This document shows, one piece after another, positions 1,527 through 7,112 of a stretch of DNA of 64,000 nucleotides (the stretch's first letter is position 1; each line of letters begins with the position of its first letter). Below the pieces are notes generated by a model, which searched no databases, had not been told where the DNA came from, and saw nothing but the letters and a program-made list of their open reading frames with translations. The stretch is from Entomortierella parvispora E1425. Lineage: Eukaryota > Fungi > Mortierellomycota. The position numbers and the translations under genes were made by a program. Where the stretch lies: positions 1,612,001-1,676,000 of the forward strand of contig BQFW01000006.1 in NCBI GenBank assembly GCA_020891255.1, given 5' to 3'.

Positions 1527-2777
1527 CTAGTAGCCTCCTTGGTAGTATCCTCCTTGGTTAGGCGGTGGCATGTTATATTGTGGTGCTGGATAGTCTCCAT
1601 AGGCACCTCCGGGGGTGTATCCATTGACCTGTCCCTGATTGTGCCAGCCCTGGGGTGGGATAGAGCTCATTCGCTTGTTGATCGCACTCGTGAATCCAGG
1701 ATTCGGTGGATAGTATCCCAATTCTTCCCCTCCTCCTCCGCCACCACCTCCGTATTGCGAAGAATTGTCAAACTGTCCCTCTAAACAATGACGGGGGAAG
1801 ACGCCCTTGATGCCGCCTCTCGTGTTATTAACGCCCATACACCAACCATCGTCATACTCCTGCAAGATCGTGACCGAGTCTCCGAGGTTGATCTCAATCT
1901 CATCTGCCAACGCGGGCGTGTAGGTCGATCTCACACTAAACGTCCCCAGGGGCTTGGTCGGTGTCATCGGAAGGCTCTCCTTGGCCTTGGACGCCTCGGA
2001 GATCTTTGCGTAGGGGTTGTTATGGTTGAATTGAGCCGTCTGCTGCAAGAGAGCCGTGGCAAGGTTCTTCTTCCTTCGATGGCGACAGAACGCGACACCG
2101 CCTAGGGCGAAAACGATCAGACCTCCAACAATGCCCAGGCCAATAAAGACCTTCTCGGATACTTTGGTCGGTACCCCTGATCCATCATCCGATGAAGGTG
2201 AAACGGAGGGTGATGCTGAATCTGTTGAACTGGATCCTGGGCTGGCCACTGGTGCTGAAGCAGAGTGTGCGTTCGAAGAAGAGTGTGTTGTCTTGGACGG
2301 TGATGGATTAGGATTAGGATTAGAAGGGGGGCTAGAGGAAGGACTCGGGTTGGGATGAGGTGCGGGGTTTGGATTCGGGATCGTAGGCGTTGGTTGCGGA
2401 TGAGGAGAAGAAGGGCCAGGCAGGGTGCTTGGTTCAGGGTCTGGATTCTGAGTGGATGGAGGTAGAGCTACTGGTGATGATTTTGGGTGCGACGTTTGGA
2501 CAGGAGCTGGAACTACTGGAGGCTCTACAGCAGGTGGAGCAGCGACGGGAGAGATATTGTGCGCAGGAGGAGAAGGAGGAGGAGAGAGGGAAGAAAGTGG
2601 AGGAAGCTGAAATTGTCTCTTTCGGAAATACGATGATCGCGTTGCTCGGGCGACTAGTTCCAGTTGGTTCAGCTTGCCGTCGTTGTCGTTGTTGGGGAGA
2701 GGATGTGCTTCTGTGGACAAGGAGAGGAGGGCGAGGAAGGCAAGGACTGCCAAGGTCGATTGGGGGTTGAACCGCAT
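1527..2777 (-). CDS. Single-pass membrane protein with signal peptide, Pro/Ser-rich ectodomain, TM helix and cytosolic SH3 domain (416 aa)
   Basis: Intronless ORF with hydrophobic N-terminus, FRKR dibasic site, PNPNP/Ser-rich tract, TM VFIGLGIVGGLIVFALGGVAFC followed by RHRRKK, and SH3 signature YTPALADEIEINLGD...YDDGWCMG...GVFPRHC. Confidence 0.9.
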   Translation of the reverse strand: MRFNPQSTLAVLAFLALLSLSTEAHPLPNNDNDGKLNQLELVARATRSSYFRKRQFQLPPLSSLSPPPSPPAHNISPVAAPPAVEPPVVPAPVQTSHPKSSPVALPPSTQNPDPEPSTLPGPSSPHPQPTPTIPNPNPAPHPNPSPSSSPPSNPNPNPSPSKTTHSSSNAHSASAPVASPGSSSTDSASPSVSPSSDDGSGVPTKVSEKVFIGLGIVGGLIVFALGGVAFCRHRRKKNLATALLQQTAQFNHNNPYAKISEASKAKESLPMTPTKPLGTFSVRSTYTPALADEIEINLGDSVTILQEYDDGWCMGVNNTRGGIKGVFPRHCLEGQFDNSSQYGGGGGGGGEELGYYPPNPGFTSAINKRMSSIPPQGWHNQGQVNGYTPGGAYGDYPAPQYNMPPPNQGGYYQGGY

Positions 2778-3183
2778 AGGGTTGGTGTGGGGTCGTTAAA
2801 CCTTTTGTTGTCAAAAAAAAACAAGAAAAAAAGGTCGTGAAGGGTGGCGAGAATTCGGGGATGGACGCGAAAGTGGGGGGAGTCCTGAGAAGTTCTGTTT
2901 AAAAGAGAAAAAAAAGACAGACAGACGACGGTCGCTGAAAGTGAAGGACAAGGTCTGGGTAGCGTACAGTACAACGGGATCCAAAAATAAGTTAATTAAT
3001 TGCGAGGTTGATTGTAGCGTGGATCGAATACCAGACTAATGGGAGGCTATCTCGCTTGTTTACATTGACACGCTGTACTTACAAGAAAGAGGGGGGGATG
3101 TAGGACGAGGGGGATAGGTCAAGAACGAAGAAAAAGTGAAGGAAAGAGAGGAAAGGGAGCGGAAACAAAAAAGGTCGTTGTGC

Positions 3184-3217
3184 GAGTAAGCACTGAGGAG
3201 TAAGCACTGAGGAGTAA
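3184..3217 (+). repeat. Tandem 14-bp duplication (GAGTAAGCACTGAG)x2 plus a partial copy
   Basis: Read directly at 3184-3197, 3198-3211 and 3212-3217. Confidence 0.85.
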
Positions 3218-4067
3218 TCACAAGCACACTAGACCAGCAGATGGGCAAGGAATTTAAAAAAAGGAACTAGGAAATAAAACAAGGCACGAACGGAGCGTTG
3301 CTTTGCTCTGGACAATAGTAGGCGACAATAAAACTGAACGGAAAGAGTGGAAGGGTGACCTGTCTGTGTTGTCTGTGTGAGCGATGCAGGAGGTGGTTCA
3401 ATGGGTCAGGAGAAAATGGAGTAGTCTTTAGACGCGGGTGTTGCGTTGCCACGATGATTGTGTGAGCAATTGTGCACGGATCCGGAACAGAAACACCCAC
3501 AGAGGAGTGCTGCAGGAAGGTCCCTTTCAGTGGGAGGCCAGCAAAGAAAGCAAGGAGATGACACAACTGGTACAGACGGAGGCAGCACTTTTTTGGGGCG
3601 GGAATGTCGTAAACGAAGGTGCAATATGAAAATACAAAAAGAAAGAAAAGAGGGGAGGACTTGCACTGCAGCAGTCGGGGTATGTGTCTCCAGCGTGTCG
3701 CCCGAGATTGGCGCACGAACAAGGTTGGCCAGGGGCGCCTGCCTGTAATTGTCTCCGCAATGAATGACCCAAAAATTGGGGTCCAGGTCCAGCGCCACCA
3801 AAATGACTTGGGTCACATGATCGATAAGCCACCCTAGCAAGCTTATATCACAGAGAAAAATTTTCCCAGTGTGTTTTGTTCTTTGTCCTTCACCCACATC
3901 CTTCCTTTGTACCAAGGGTAAGTCCGTCGATCTGCTTGATACTCTCCTCCCCTTCATTCCTCCTATTCGCCGCCGATCGCGTTGACATTGCCGGATTCAT
4001 AGGTCATAGTCAAATACTCTTTGACCCGTGCCTTCGTACCGAGCCTTGTCTTCCATCGGTGGACTAT

Positions 4068-4196
4068 TCGCGTTATTGTGAATGATGATTCCAACTTTGT
4101 CTTCATTTTATCTTATCGACCATGGTGAAACTTTTACATTCCTTCGCTGAGGAGTGTCATACTTGCCAGTATAATCCACTGACCCACATAATGCGA
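4068..4196 (+). ncRNA. Candidate box C/D snoRNA, target not identified (intron 1 of host)
   Basis: C box ATGATGA 4082-4088, internal CTGA 4147-4150, D box CTGA 4179-4182. A 12-bp terminal stem (4068-4080 with 4185-4196) has one bulge and one G-U pair. Confidence 0.7.
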
Positions 4197-4405
4197 CCCA
4201 CAACTTGATCCCAATCCACTTGCAAAGAAATGTATGTTGATCATGTATCTAACCTGTACATTCTATCGTCTGCGAACAGGTCTTTGTTTCGATCTTTCTG
4301 ATAATTCGGAAGGTTTCCTCACCTTGGCCCGCGGTTGACCAAGATGTAACGAGATGGTGAGTTTGAATCACAATTTGGCATTTGCCATTGTTGTGTGACA
4401 GGATT

Positions 4406-4586
4406 TTGAATGATGAAGATCTTTAATTCGCAGTTTCCACCGAAAGGACCATGTTTAAGAACATTCACAGCCTCTTCCATCTCATCTCGAGTGTCAGTGA
4501 AGCGATCAGAGAGCAGTATGCCATCGTCGAGTGCTGTGGATGGATCTTTCCTGATGATGGACTTAACTTCCTTGGATGTCTGATCA
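4406..4586 (+). ncRNA. U14: U14 box C/D snoRNA (intron 2 of host)
   Basis: C box ATGATGA 4410-4416. Domain A ATTCGCAGTTTC 4426-4437 is antisense to conserved 18S GAAACUGCGAAU. Domain B CTTCCTTGGATGT 4567-4579 is antisense to 18S ACAUCCAAGGAAG and directly precedes D box CTGA 4580-4583. These are the diagnostic U14/snR128 elements. Confidence 0.93.
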
Positions 4587-4863
4587 CTATTCTCGACACA
4601 ATTTTTTTTTCTCCTTTCAATCAATTGCTCATGGTATTCAATATCAGATCGCTAACCGCCTTTCGATTTGTGTTCAGTCTTTAGATACCCTCGTTGATCA
4701 CATCTTGTCTTTCCAGTCCACAATCAACCCGTCTTCTCAAGGTAATAACAACGTCGATTTTTGGACATTTGAACATCCATCGAATAAGGTGGAAGGTGGG
4801 GGTTATCACAAAGGATCGCGTTCACAGGAGAATAAAAGGAAAGAAAAAAAGAGAGGGGGAAGA

Positions 4864-4964
4864 ATTTCAATGATGAAATTACATTTTATAATTCTTTGAT
4901 AGGAAAAGCCGTCTTATAGTCCCTAAGATACTGAGGACATGACGAGAAAATGTTTTCTGAAAAT
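4864..4964 (+). ncRNA. Candidate box C/D snoRNA (intron 3 of host)
   Basis: Boxes in canonical order: C ATGATGA 4870-4876, D' CTGA 4931-4934, C' ATGACGA 4939-4945, D CTGA 4957-4960. An external stem (4826-4839 with 4966-4979) has 13 of 14 positions paired, including one G-U. Confidence 0.72.
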
Positions 4965-5325
4965 ACCTTCTGTTCTCCTTCGTGTTCGTGATCTCTTTTG
5001 TGAGGTTTTTCCCAGAGAGGGGGAAAATGAGGGCAGGAGGGTCTTCGAGTCCATCGCAATGAATTTTACAGACTCTAACGTCAAATACTTCAATTTATTC
5101 CGAACAGATTCACTTCAAGAATACAGGCTCCTTGTTACAGAAATCGTTTAAGGTAAGTTCAATCTCAAGATTTGTAGTCAAGGTGCTTGAAGCGAAATAA
5201 TAAAAAAAACGTTGAAAAATACCTTTTCTTGAATTGAAGTCGATGAGGCAGCGTGATGTTCATGATGAATGCAGCAGACATTGTTTAAATCTGCACAGCG
5301 GCGAAGATCTTGAAGGTCCATTGAG

Positions 5326-5370
5326 TCACGTGATATGCATATCATGTGATTTCAGTTCGTTATCACGTGA
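5326..5370. promoter_or_regulatory. Imperfect 24-bp palindrome and two TCACGTGA E-box (bHLH) sites upstream of the tRNA
   Basis: TCACGTGATATGCATATCATGTGA at 5326-5349, and a second TCACGTGA at 5363-5370. Function is inferred only. Confidence 0.4.
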
Positions 5371-5419
5371 TTATATTTGTATTTAAATGTCTGAGAAACA
5401 TAACCGATAAGTGATCAAG

Positions 5420-5491
5420 GCTAACATAGTATAATGGTTAGTATATCTCGTTGTGGCCGAGACGATCCTGGTTCGATTCCAGGTGTTAGCA
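5420..5491 (+). tRNA. tRNA-His (GTG), intronless
   Basis: Acceptor stem GCTAACA/TGTTAGC, anticodon arm TCTCG-TTGTGGC-CGAGA, T-arm CCTGG-TTCGATT-CCAGG, discriminator A, and Pol III terminator TTTTT at 5499-5503. Confidence 0.97.
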
Positions 5492-6094
5492 CACTTACTT
5501 TTTGCATTTTCGGATAGTCCACTTTTGCTGCTGTAGGCTACTCCACAAATGCAGGAGCGCAAAAGAGATCCGCGTGCGCTTCATACTTTTTTAGATGTCC
5601 CGAAAATGGCTCCATTGTGCTCAAGGCTATGTTTTTATTGGACGCTTGTGTTAGACGGGTACTTCTGGGCTAGTATCGCAAGCATCGCAAGGCTAGGATT
5701 CTTGTCGCTGCACTTGTTTTAGCTACGCGTCCTGACCATTTAGAGTCAGAGGAAATATATGCCAGGTATCGATGTTTTAACACCGTTCTACATGGGGCAA
5801 CTGGGTGCCTCGACCTATTGCTATGGTTTGGAAGAATACCATACCAGTATATGATTATATGATTGGGGGGATGACTGAGTTGGTACCAGGGCTTTAGAAC
5901 AAGTACACGAGTTAGAATCACCTCAGCAAGCGCATTCTCATTCACCACTAAATAATATCCCACGCCTGCAACATGCTCAAAAACATTTCTTAGAAATGGT
6001 GCCAAGTTCAAGACGTTTCAATAAGTATATTATGAAGTAAATGTTACAGGGTATTATTTCAGATAAAAGTACATGAGATAGTGGAACGGAAGCC

Positions 6095-7112
6095 CTACGG
6101 GCGTTGTTGAGAAGGAAGGGAAGTCAAAGGGGATGAGGATGAAGATGAGGCCGAATGAATGCTCGAGCCTACAAATTGGTCCTCTGCCACTGTCTCTTGG
6201 TACTTTGGCGGCAAGGCCTCTCCGAGAAGGATATTGTGTTGTGGATCATTTAACGCATCCGATTCTGTCTTTGGCATATAACTTGGCAACTCATTGTCCC
6301 TGGCAAGGATTTCCTCATCAGAAGCGTGTGGGTCGGATGCAGGATGGTCATGGAACGAATGCTCGTCAATATGATCAATAGTCGTCAAATCTACTGTCCA
6401 GCACGGCAATCCCAAGTTGAACCGATAGGCCATTCGTGTCATCCTGGTGCCCACCGTGTGGTGCCTGGGACGCAGTCTGTAAAGGACTCCGTAGCGAACC
6501 ATATCCTGATTGTTGAATGTTTGCAACAGTTCCTGAATGCTCTTTTGTGCCTATTCAGAACAAATTTGGTTTCATGGTTTCACAGAGAAAATGAGGGGAC
6601 AACAGATTAGCCAATATACGGGATGGAAGGAAGTGATACATGGTCTGCAACCTTGCTGTCCAAGGATGGCCGGAAAAGGGTGTGGGAAAACCGGAAAAGA
6701 GGTTTGTTACCTTCTCCAACCGTGCGAGAAACGACATCTTGGATACAAAGGTCAGGATCATGACCGCAATCACCCCCAAGACCCACAGTTTCCCGTCGCT
6801 GACATGGAGTGCCAGGAGCGTGATGACAAAGGCGATAAAAAAGACAAGGACAGAAACCACGGAGGCCACATAGGTGTAAGTCGACGGGAAGTGCAAGTTG
6901 AGGTGTTCCTGAAGGCTTTTGACTCGGACTTGAAACAGCTCCACAGGGTACTCTCCGAGAGGAATTTGAGAAGTAGCAACGCTGAGGTCGATGACTTGCC
7001 CTTGTTCTTGTTGTTGAGGTGTATGTTGTTCTTGTTTTTGTGAGGACCCTTGCAGGTCCAGTGTGGGTCTCCTGAAAGTAAGTAATAGTGGCAGAGAGCG
7101 AAGGATAGGCAT
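6095..7112 (-). CDS. Hypothetical two-TM membrane protein (~285 aa) with C-terminal PY motifs
   Basis: Exons 7112-6711 and 6550-6095 join in phase 0 across a GTAACA...ATAG intron. There are two hydrophobic helices, and LPSY and PPKY in the tail. The start codon is uncertain. Confidence 0.7.

Follow-up and report, generated by a model that had tools for sequence, protein, structure and literature searches.

What does the region between approximately 3870 and 5153 of a 64,000-nucleotide (nt) stretch of the genome of Entomortierella parvispora E1425, an early-diverging soil fungus of the family Mortierellaceae, encode? This stretch, hereafter the window, comprises positions 1612001-1676000 of contig BQFW01000006.1 (C6) in a genome of 38.9 Mb, and coordinates below refer to it unless another contig is named. 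An earlier reading of the DNA, the original prediction, had proposed that positions 3918-5152 conceal an unannotated non-coding host gene resembling GAS5 and UHG, with one box C/D small nucleolar RNA (snoRNA), U14 among them, in each of three introns. Our analysis indicates that the region is very probably a non-protein-coding, spliced snoRNA host gene of RNA polymerase II, which would extend on the + strand from about 3870 to beyond 5153. Its predicted exons and introns, read directly from the sequence of 3300-5800 and with a script, are listed here.

3870-3917, + strand: exon 1, pyrimidine-rich and without an ATG; the 5' end is approximate, its start inferred from a TATA-like element
3918-4279, + strand: intron 1 (362 nt), GTAAGT at the 5' end, CTAAC at 4249, 27 nt from branch A to AG
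4280-4356, + strand: exon 2 (77 nt), non-coding
4357-4677, + strand: intron 2 (321 nt), GTGAGT at the 5' end, CTAAC at 4652, 22 nt from branch A to AG
4678-4741, + strand: exon 3 (64 nt), non-coding
4742-5107, + strand: intron 3 (366 nt), GTAATA at the 5' end, CTAAC at 5075, 29 nt from branch A to AG
5108-5152, + strand: exon 4 (45 nt), non-coding
5153-5419, + strand: start of intron 4, GTAAGT at 5153

Introns 1 to 3 each contain one snoRNA between canonical splice signals. The C box ATGATGA occurs exactly once per intron, at 4082, 4410 and 4870, followed by a terminal CTGA D box at 4179, 4580 and 4957, respectively, and each snoRNA has a short terminal stem. These three introns coincide exactly with those of the original prediction, as do the box pair in each of them and the exon lengths, which had been given as 45-77 nt. 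The start of the D box precedes that of CTAAC by 70, 72 and 118 nt in introns 1, 2 and 3, respectively; with the D box end as the starting point, the first two distances become 67 and 69 nt, close to the value of about 67 nt that had been proposed for them. A fourth 5' splice site, GTAAGT, begins at 5153, directly after the end of the proposed span at 5152. A composite pattern made up of a 5' splice site, C box, D box, CTAAC and AG had two matches in the 64-kb window, which were introns 1 and 3; intron 2 was missed through the spacing limit of the pattern only. In 100 second-order Markov resamples, the same pattern gave a mean of 0.07 matches, so that its observed frequency was approximately 30-fold above chance.

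For comparison, we used relatives returned by one metagenome scan with a two-part U14 pattern. Three of the five loci found were retained: L009, a close relative that is 81% identical over window positions 2827-4795, and the more distant L007 and L005. The other two, L006 and L008, were set aside, as they contain tandem U14 copies and have nothing else in common with the window. The genome itself also contains a paralogue on the minus strand of contig C5, at about 857.5-858.4 kb (L012, - strand, from ~2260 down to 1290), which carries copies of the snoRNAs of intron 1 (92% identical) and intron 2 (85%), each in its own GTAAG...CTAAC...AG intron; the two introns are followed by AATAAA. In all four of these loci, the snoRNAs shared with the window occur in the same order. 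L007 has all three, and after them come a 48-nt exon and then GTAAGT, in the positions that exon 4 and the GTAAGT of 5153 occupy here.

Conservation in these relatives follows the snoRNAs and not the exons. The snoRNA of intron 1 and U14 are 99.1% and 99.4% identical to L009, compared with 79% for exon 2, 75% for exon 3 and mostly 65-75% for the intron flanks; the putative exon 1 (3878-3917) and the short 5' flank of intron 2 (4357-4406) were higher, at 95% and 90%. The original prediction passed its own test that the boxes be better conserved than their flanks (~99% against 65-79%). Against L007, L005 and the C5 paralogue, the snoRNAs alone can be aligned, and the exons cannot. The splice signals of intron 1 are nevertheless kept in L009, L007, L005 and the paralogue, and the GTAATA 5' splice site of intron 3 recurs in L009 and L007. 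A non-coding host would be expected to retain its snoRNAs and splice signals while its exons diverge, as is the case here, and the resemblance to GAS5 and UHG that had been suggested is supported by this pattern and by the lack of coding signal described below.

The same snoRNAs could instead be released from an unspliced polycistronic precursor by an RNase III-type endonuclease, as happens with SNR190-U14 of Saccharomyces cerevisiae and in plants, in which case the GT...CTAAC...AG arrangement would be incidental. There is precedent for this, because yeast snR190-U14 is made by such cleavage and U14 of Schizosaccharomyces pombe matures largely independently of splicing (PMC11971394). For the present locus we consider it very improbable. 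A 5' splice site, CTAAC or CTAAT, and AG bracket 11 of 11 snoRNA copies whose intron ends could be read, in five loci, although their surroundings have diverged beyond alignment. The regular spacing between D box and branch point (56-89 nt in most copies) and the excess of the composite pattern over chance also argue against an unspliced precursor and for the spliced host gene.

It was also conceivable that the spliced host encodes a protein or micropeptide and carries snoRNAs in its introns, as many ribosomal-protein genes do. We judged coding potential exon by exon. At least one frame is open in every internal exon, and an ATG in the last nucleotides of exon 2, kept in four of the five copies, could open approximately 36 codons through exons 3 and 4, according to frame arithmetic on the separate exons. 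However, exon 2 contains stops in two of its three frames, and its single open frame is closed by a stop at codon 2 of exon 3. Relative to L009, exon 2 has a 2-nt indel and the indels of exon 3 sum to +1, neither a multiple of three, and the latter breaks the frame that starts at the ATG; in L007, that frame stops after two codons. As noted above, L007, L005 and the paralogue have exons too divergent to align, and no open reading frame (ORF) of the region had a Pfam match. The terminal ATG may have been kept because it coincides with the exonic part of the 5' splice site. Judged exon by exon, no frame remains open from one exon through the next, and the exons lack a conserved reading frame and evolve faster than the snoRNAs, in keeping with the earlier statement that the region has no credible ORF, and a coding host is hardly to be expected here.

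To identify the snoRNAs of the non-coding host gene, we searched the whole window with Rfam at gathering thresholds and positions 3000-6500 again with E-value reporting. Antisense elements were scanned against the ribosomal DNA of the same genome (18S, 5.8S/internal transcribed spacer (ITS) and 25S), with significance expressed as the fraction of shuffled guides that did equally well. The three intronic snoRNAs and their parts are as follows.

4077-4188, + strand: snoRNA 1 (intron 1), of the snR107/snR190/SNORD12 family, with C box 4082-4088, D' box CTTA 4112-4115, C' box 4122-4128 and D box 4179-4182
4136-4157 and 4162-4172, + strand: hairpin and antisense element for 25S domain I, inner parts of snoRNA 1
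4407-4586, + strand: U14 (intron 2; 180 nt), with C box 4410-4416, domain A 4426-4441, domain B 4567-4579 and D box 4580-4583
4864-4964, + strand: snoRNA 3 (intron 3), SNORD49-like, with C box 4870-4876, D' box CTTA 4913-4916, C' box 4939-4945 and D box 4957-4960
4897-4911, + strand: guide of snoRNA 3, upstream of D'; an internal stem lies between D' and C'

U14 has box C ATGATGA, box D CTGA and a terminal stem formed by flanking TGA and TCA, and it matched Rfam family RF00016 (SNORD14) at 4407-4586 with 35.3 bits (E 9e-5). Within domain A, which is invariant in four species, 4426-4437 pairs at 12 of 12 positions with 84-95 of the organism's own 18S ribosomal RNA (rRNA), a result equaled by a fraction of 0.013 (1.3%) of shuffled guides. 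Domain B pairs at 13 of 13 positions (4567-4579 with 18S 411-423; 0.7% of shuffles equal), and it abuts the D box, which places 18S C415 at the fifth position from box D. We infer from this register that domain B guides methylation of C415, which we take to be the counterpart of yeast 18S C414. The long internal stem domain between domains A and B (4442-4566) includes an insertion that is nearly identical in L009, and the stem shows compensatory changes in L005. As both 18S-complementary domains match the organism's own 18S, the identification of U14, made already in the original prediction, appears secure in spite of its modest Rfam score. The two loci that were set aside, L006 and L008, belong to unrelated organisms, and their U14 copies score above the Rfam threshold; L008 has a SNORD53-like match between its two U14 copies and represents a tandem snoRNA cluster of another lineage.

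snoRNA 1 lies 219 nt upstream of U14 on the same strand, in an order shared by L009, L007, L005 and the C5 paralogue. Its best Rfam match, aligned over the full length at 4077-4187, was RF04328 (snR107; 36.2 bits, E 2e-4), which was again the best family for the copies of L005, L007 and L009 (31-40 bits). The stem of the hairpin at 4136-4157 covaries in L005. RNA of the RF04328 type was described in 2025 as S. pombe snR107, a snoRNA syntenic with U14 whose orthologues are snR190 in yeast and SNORD12 in human (PMC11971394); the linkage of U14 with snR190 to which the original prediction had alluded is therefore present here, with the snR190-family member upstream. In this family, the first antisense element normally pairs with helix 73 of 25S, in a register that puts a G (G2483 in S. 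pombe, G2395 in yeast) five nt away from D'. In E. parvispora only GTCTTC (4099-4104) of this element pairs cleanly, with 25S 2528-2533, and snoRNA 1 does not have the part of the family consensus expected to pair with the G-run of helix 73. The guide is in the same degenerate state in all five Mortierellaceae copies. The second antisense element, 4162-4172, can pair with 25S 324-334 in domain I over 11 base pairs, two of them G-U, and differs at one position in L009 and L007; it is too distant from box D to guide methylation. Yeast snR190 has a chaperone function and does not methylate (PMC8536666). Given the degenerate helix-73 guide, a chaperone-type role is to be expected in place of methylation, and snoRNA 1 is probably, by analogy with snR190, a 25S folding chaperone. 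Two other readings of snoRNA 1 were discarded. Pairing of the first guide with 25S 978-994 (17 nt, with four G-U pairs and one mismatch) was non-significant and had a G-U at the target position, and the CTGA at 4147, considered as a D' box, sits within the conserved hairpin loop.

The guide of snoRNA 3 pairs at 14 of 15 positions with the organism's own 25S at 3004-3018 (shuffle fraction 0.03), with 25S C3007 at the fifth position from D'. L007 has exactly the same guide, D' and C', and covariation is seen in the internal stem. Weak Rfam matches at about 4863-4962 to SNORD49, Me28S-U3344 and SNORD61 all fall on one antisense element. In SNORD49, the element upstream of D' is expected to be directed at the cytidine of the GUCGGCUC stretch, which is conserved in the large subunit. 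The target of SNORD49 is human 28S Cm4456 (PMC9941101). On this basis, snoRNA 3 is predicted to be a SNORD49-like guide that methylates 25S C3007. By numbering arithmetic we tentatively equate C3007 with human 28S C4456. The CTGA at 4931 was rejected as a D' box for snoRNA 3, as it falls in the loop of the covarying D'-C' stem.

Several observations weigh against these assignments. None of the three snoRNAs reaches the gathering score of its family: snoRNA 1 falls short of the 44 bits of RF04328, U14 of the 64 bits of RF00016, and the SNORD49 match (RF00277) has 20.2 bits and an E-value of 0.14, as compared to a gathering score of 37 bits. In the case of U14, the low score is explained by a 104-nt insertion between the two 18S-binding domains. 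The antisense elements of snoRNA 1 were individually non-significant against rRNA, with shuffle fractions of 0.12 for the first and 0.23 for the second, and the helix-73 guide register, counted from D' at 4112-4115, fails to reach 25S G2523, so that the expected G is not at the fifth position. snoRNA 3 has a degenerate D' box (CTTA), and an A-C mismatch in its guide falls two positions away from the nucleotide that it is predicted to target. To these may be added a candidate fourth snoRNA, which is identified by its boxes and terminal stem alone. This candidate and its neighbor are located as follows.

5256-5401, + strand: candidate snoRNA 4 (146 nt), an orphan C/D RNA with C box ATGATGA 5262-5268, D box CTGA 5391-5394 and a terminal stem of 3+3 base pairs
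5420-5492, + strand: transfer RNA (tRNA)-His (GTG), Rfam 64.8 bits, also found by ARAGORN

Candidate snoRNA 4 is single-copy in the genome, lies outside the stretches covered by the relatives, and would possibly be a fourth, orphan C/D RNA of the host gene. Scans of 18S, 5.8S/ITS, 25S, U2 and U6 gave no significant target for it, and its fold was no better than that of shuffled sequences. A weak match to snR55/Z10 (E 7) was rejected, as it needs a GTGA D box and offers neither a terminal stem nor an 18S match. tRNA-His begins 19 nt after the candidate. Between the two there is no canonical branch site plus AG that could end intron 4, and the only CTAAC available, at 5421-5425, is inside the tRNA gene.

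This lack of a usable 3' end for intron 4 bears on whether the host gene supplies all of its presumed members. Some of them, U14 especially, might have promoters of their own, and snoRNA 4 might be a separate unit with its 3' end set by the tRNA gene. Internal U14 promoters have been proposed in Neurospora crassa and S. pombe (PMC2780460, PMC11971394). On the other hand, L007 retains the GTAAGT that follows exon 4, and inspection by eye, without a motif scan of these positions, revealed neither a TATA-like nor a HomolD-like element in the sequence immediately before U14 or snoRNA 4. We regard such a mixed arrangement as unlikely, if clearly less so than an unspliced precursor or a coding host, and the suggestion that the abutting tRNA-His gene sets the 3' end of snoRNA 4 is more speculative.

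If the spliced host gene is what the locus contains, its expression can be outlined. The precursor would be spliced, with the exons serving as throw-away spacers, and one box C/D snoRNA would come out of each intron. The core proteins Snu13, Nop56, Nop58 and fibrillarin would be expected to load onto the C/D motif in every intron, and lariat release and debranching would be followed by exonuclease trimming to the boundaries of the small nucleolar ribonucleoprotein. Of the products, U14 would act in 18S processing and in methylation of 18S C415, snoRNA 1 as a folding chaperone of 25S, and snoRNA 3 in methylation of 25S C3007.

Upstream of exon 1 lies a putative promoter with the following elements.

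3812-3864, + strand: putative promoter, with HomolD-like GTCACA 3812-3817, AAGCCACC 3826-3833, TATA-like TTATATC 3843-3849 and RRPE (ribosomal RNA processing element)-like AAAAATTTT 3856-3864

GTCAC followed by A, G or C, AAGCCACC and a TATA-like element occur upstream of all five host-gene copies, AAGCCACC being inverted in L007, and we propose from this arrangement that 3812-3864 functions as a promoter. A first genome-wide promoter pattern with a strict TATA gave no matches; the TATA-like element of the window itself also fails it. The pair AGTCAC(N3-33)AAGCCACC has 30 sites in the genome as compared to 5 for a reversed control, a six-fold enrichment. Five of ten downstream ORFs tested encode Spb1, RPS27a-ubiquitin, Gar1, RPS16 and an RRM protein. 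Since the pair also precedes ribosomal-protein and ribosome-biogenesis genes, it would tie the supply of snoRNAs to ribosome production. This suggests co-regulation of the snoRNA host with the ribosome regulon, as a lead and not a demonstration. The HomolD box of fission yeast is CAGTCACA (PMC4138321), which the first motif of the promoter resembles; the pair may be a HomolD-like ribosome-regulon module in a non-ascomycete.

The locus is the kind of gene already known from other fungi, found here in an early-diverging lineage with additional cargo and a paralogue. Cluster V of N. crassa contains CD16, the snR190 homologue, and CD37, the U14 homologue, in the introns of a UHG-like non-coding host (PMC2780460). 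As in the present locus, the snR190-family member is upstream of U14, each has its own intron, and the host has short ORFs only. The ascomycete cluster differs in having two snoRNAs, as compared to at least three and perhaps four here, and in the guide of CD16, which is predicted for 26S G2357 and corresponds to one that is degenerate in E. parvispora; its co-transcription was shown by reverse transcription PCR (PMC2780460), whereas that of the present locus is predicted. The S. pombe mamRNA-snR107-snoU14 locus (PMC11971394, PMC12508059) likewise has a non-coding precursor with an intronic RF04328 snoRNA, snR107, directly upstream of U14, and the second antisense element of snR107 is aimed at an unmodified stretch of 25S domain I, as that of snoRNA 1 would be. 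In S. pombe, however, U14 is part of the 3' exon, and cleavage of a junction hairpin by Pac1 helps to release it, whereas U14 here is intronic; for snR107, methylation of G2483 and binding of Mmi1 and Mei2 are also known, and neither activity can be inferred for snoRNA 1. SNR190-U14 of S. cerevisiae has the same two snoRNA families in the same order, but it is intronless and its snoRNAs are freed by Rnt1 cleavage.

Among vertebrates, UHG, GAS5 and ZFAS1 (host of SNORD12/12B/12C) resemble the locus in combining non-conserved exons with conserved intronic C/D snoRNAs, one to an intron, and a pyrimidine-rich first exon, and ZFAS1 carries orthologues of snoRNA 1. Vertebrate U14 is located in protein-coding hosts. 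The exons here have no homology to those of the vertebrate hosts, and a 5'TOP start would be conjectural for the pyrimidine-rich exon 1.

The linkage of an snR190/SNORD12-type snoRNA with U14 and the one-per-intron layout, both now found outside Dikarya, support the view that the arrangement is ancient and began with introns, which yeasts later lost. A stronger proposal, that the two snoRNAs in one spliced non-coding host with a HomolD-like ribosomal promoter date at least to the ancestor of Mucoromycota and Dikarya, is tentative, and we give it slightly less than an even chance. If true, the all-intronic layout would be ancestral, with the intron-plus-exon arrangement of S. pombe and the intronless one of budding yeast derived from it. 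It would also revise the view that the snR107-U14 locus shows no evident conservation outside Schizosaccharomyces (PMC12508059) and that HomolD co-regulation of snoRNAs and ribosomal proteins is unique to fission yeasts (PMC4138321). The understanding of how such host genes work would be unchanged by this locus. What the locus does offer is a set of predictions, namely that 18S C415 and 25S C3007 are methylated and 25S G2523 is not, and the promoter lead, in that the motif pair may connect snoRNA hosts with the ribosome regulon.

The original prediction had called the gene hidden, and indeed Rfam at gathering thresholds reported only tRNA-His across the whole window. With all snoRNA matches below the gathering scores, routine annotation would miss them, leaving essential snoRNAs, including U14, invisible to threshold-based Rfam searches in an early-diverging fungus. 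Gene callers may show the locus as empty or as small hypothetical proteins.

The gene directly upstream of the host gene is on the opposite strand.

1530-2777, minus strand: gene for an SH3-domain protein, with top matches in Mortierellaceae

The protein is closest to one of Gryganskiella cystojenkinii (78%), in agreement with the family named in the original prediction, and has two paralogues per Mortierellaceae species. The fact that it is also two-copy hints at an old segmental or whole-genome duplication behind the C5 paralogue of the host gene. Between the two genes, the intergenic stretch 2830-3760 is approximately 87% identical to L009, which is above the intron flanks of the host gene, and a minus-strand GTAAGT occurs within it, near 3080. 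This stretch is probably a 5' untranslated exon and an intron of the SH3 gene, and the SH3 gene and the host gene may then share a divergent promoter region.

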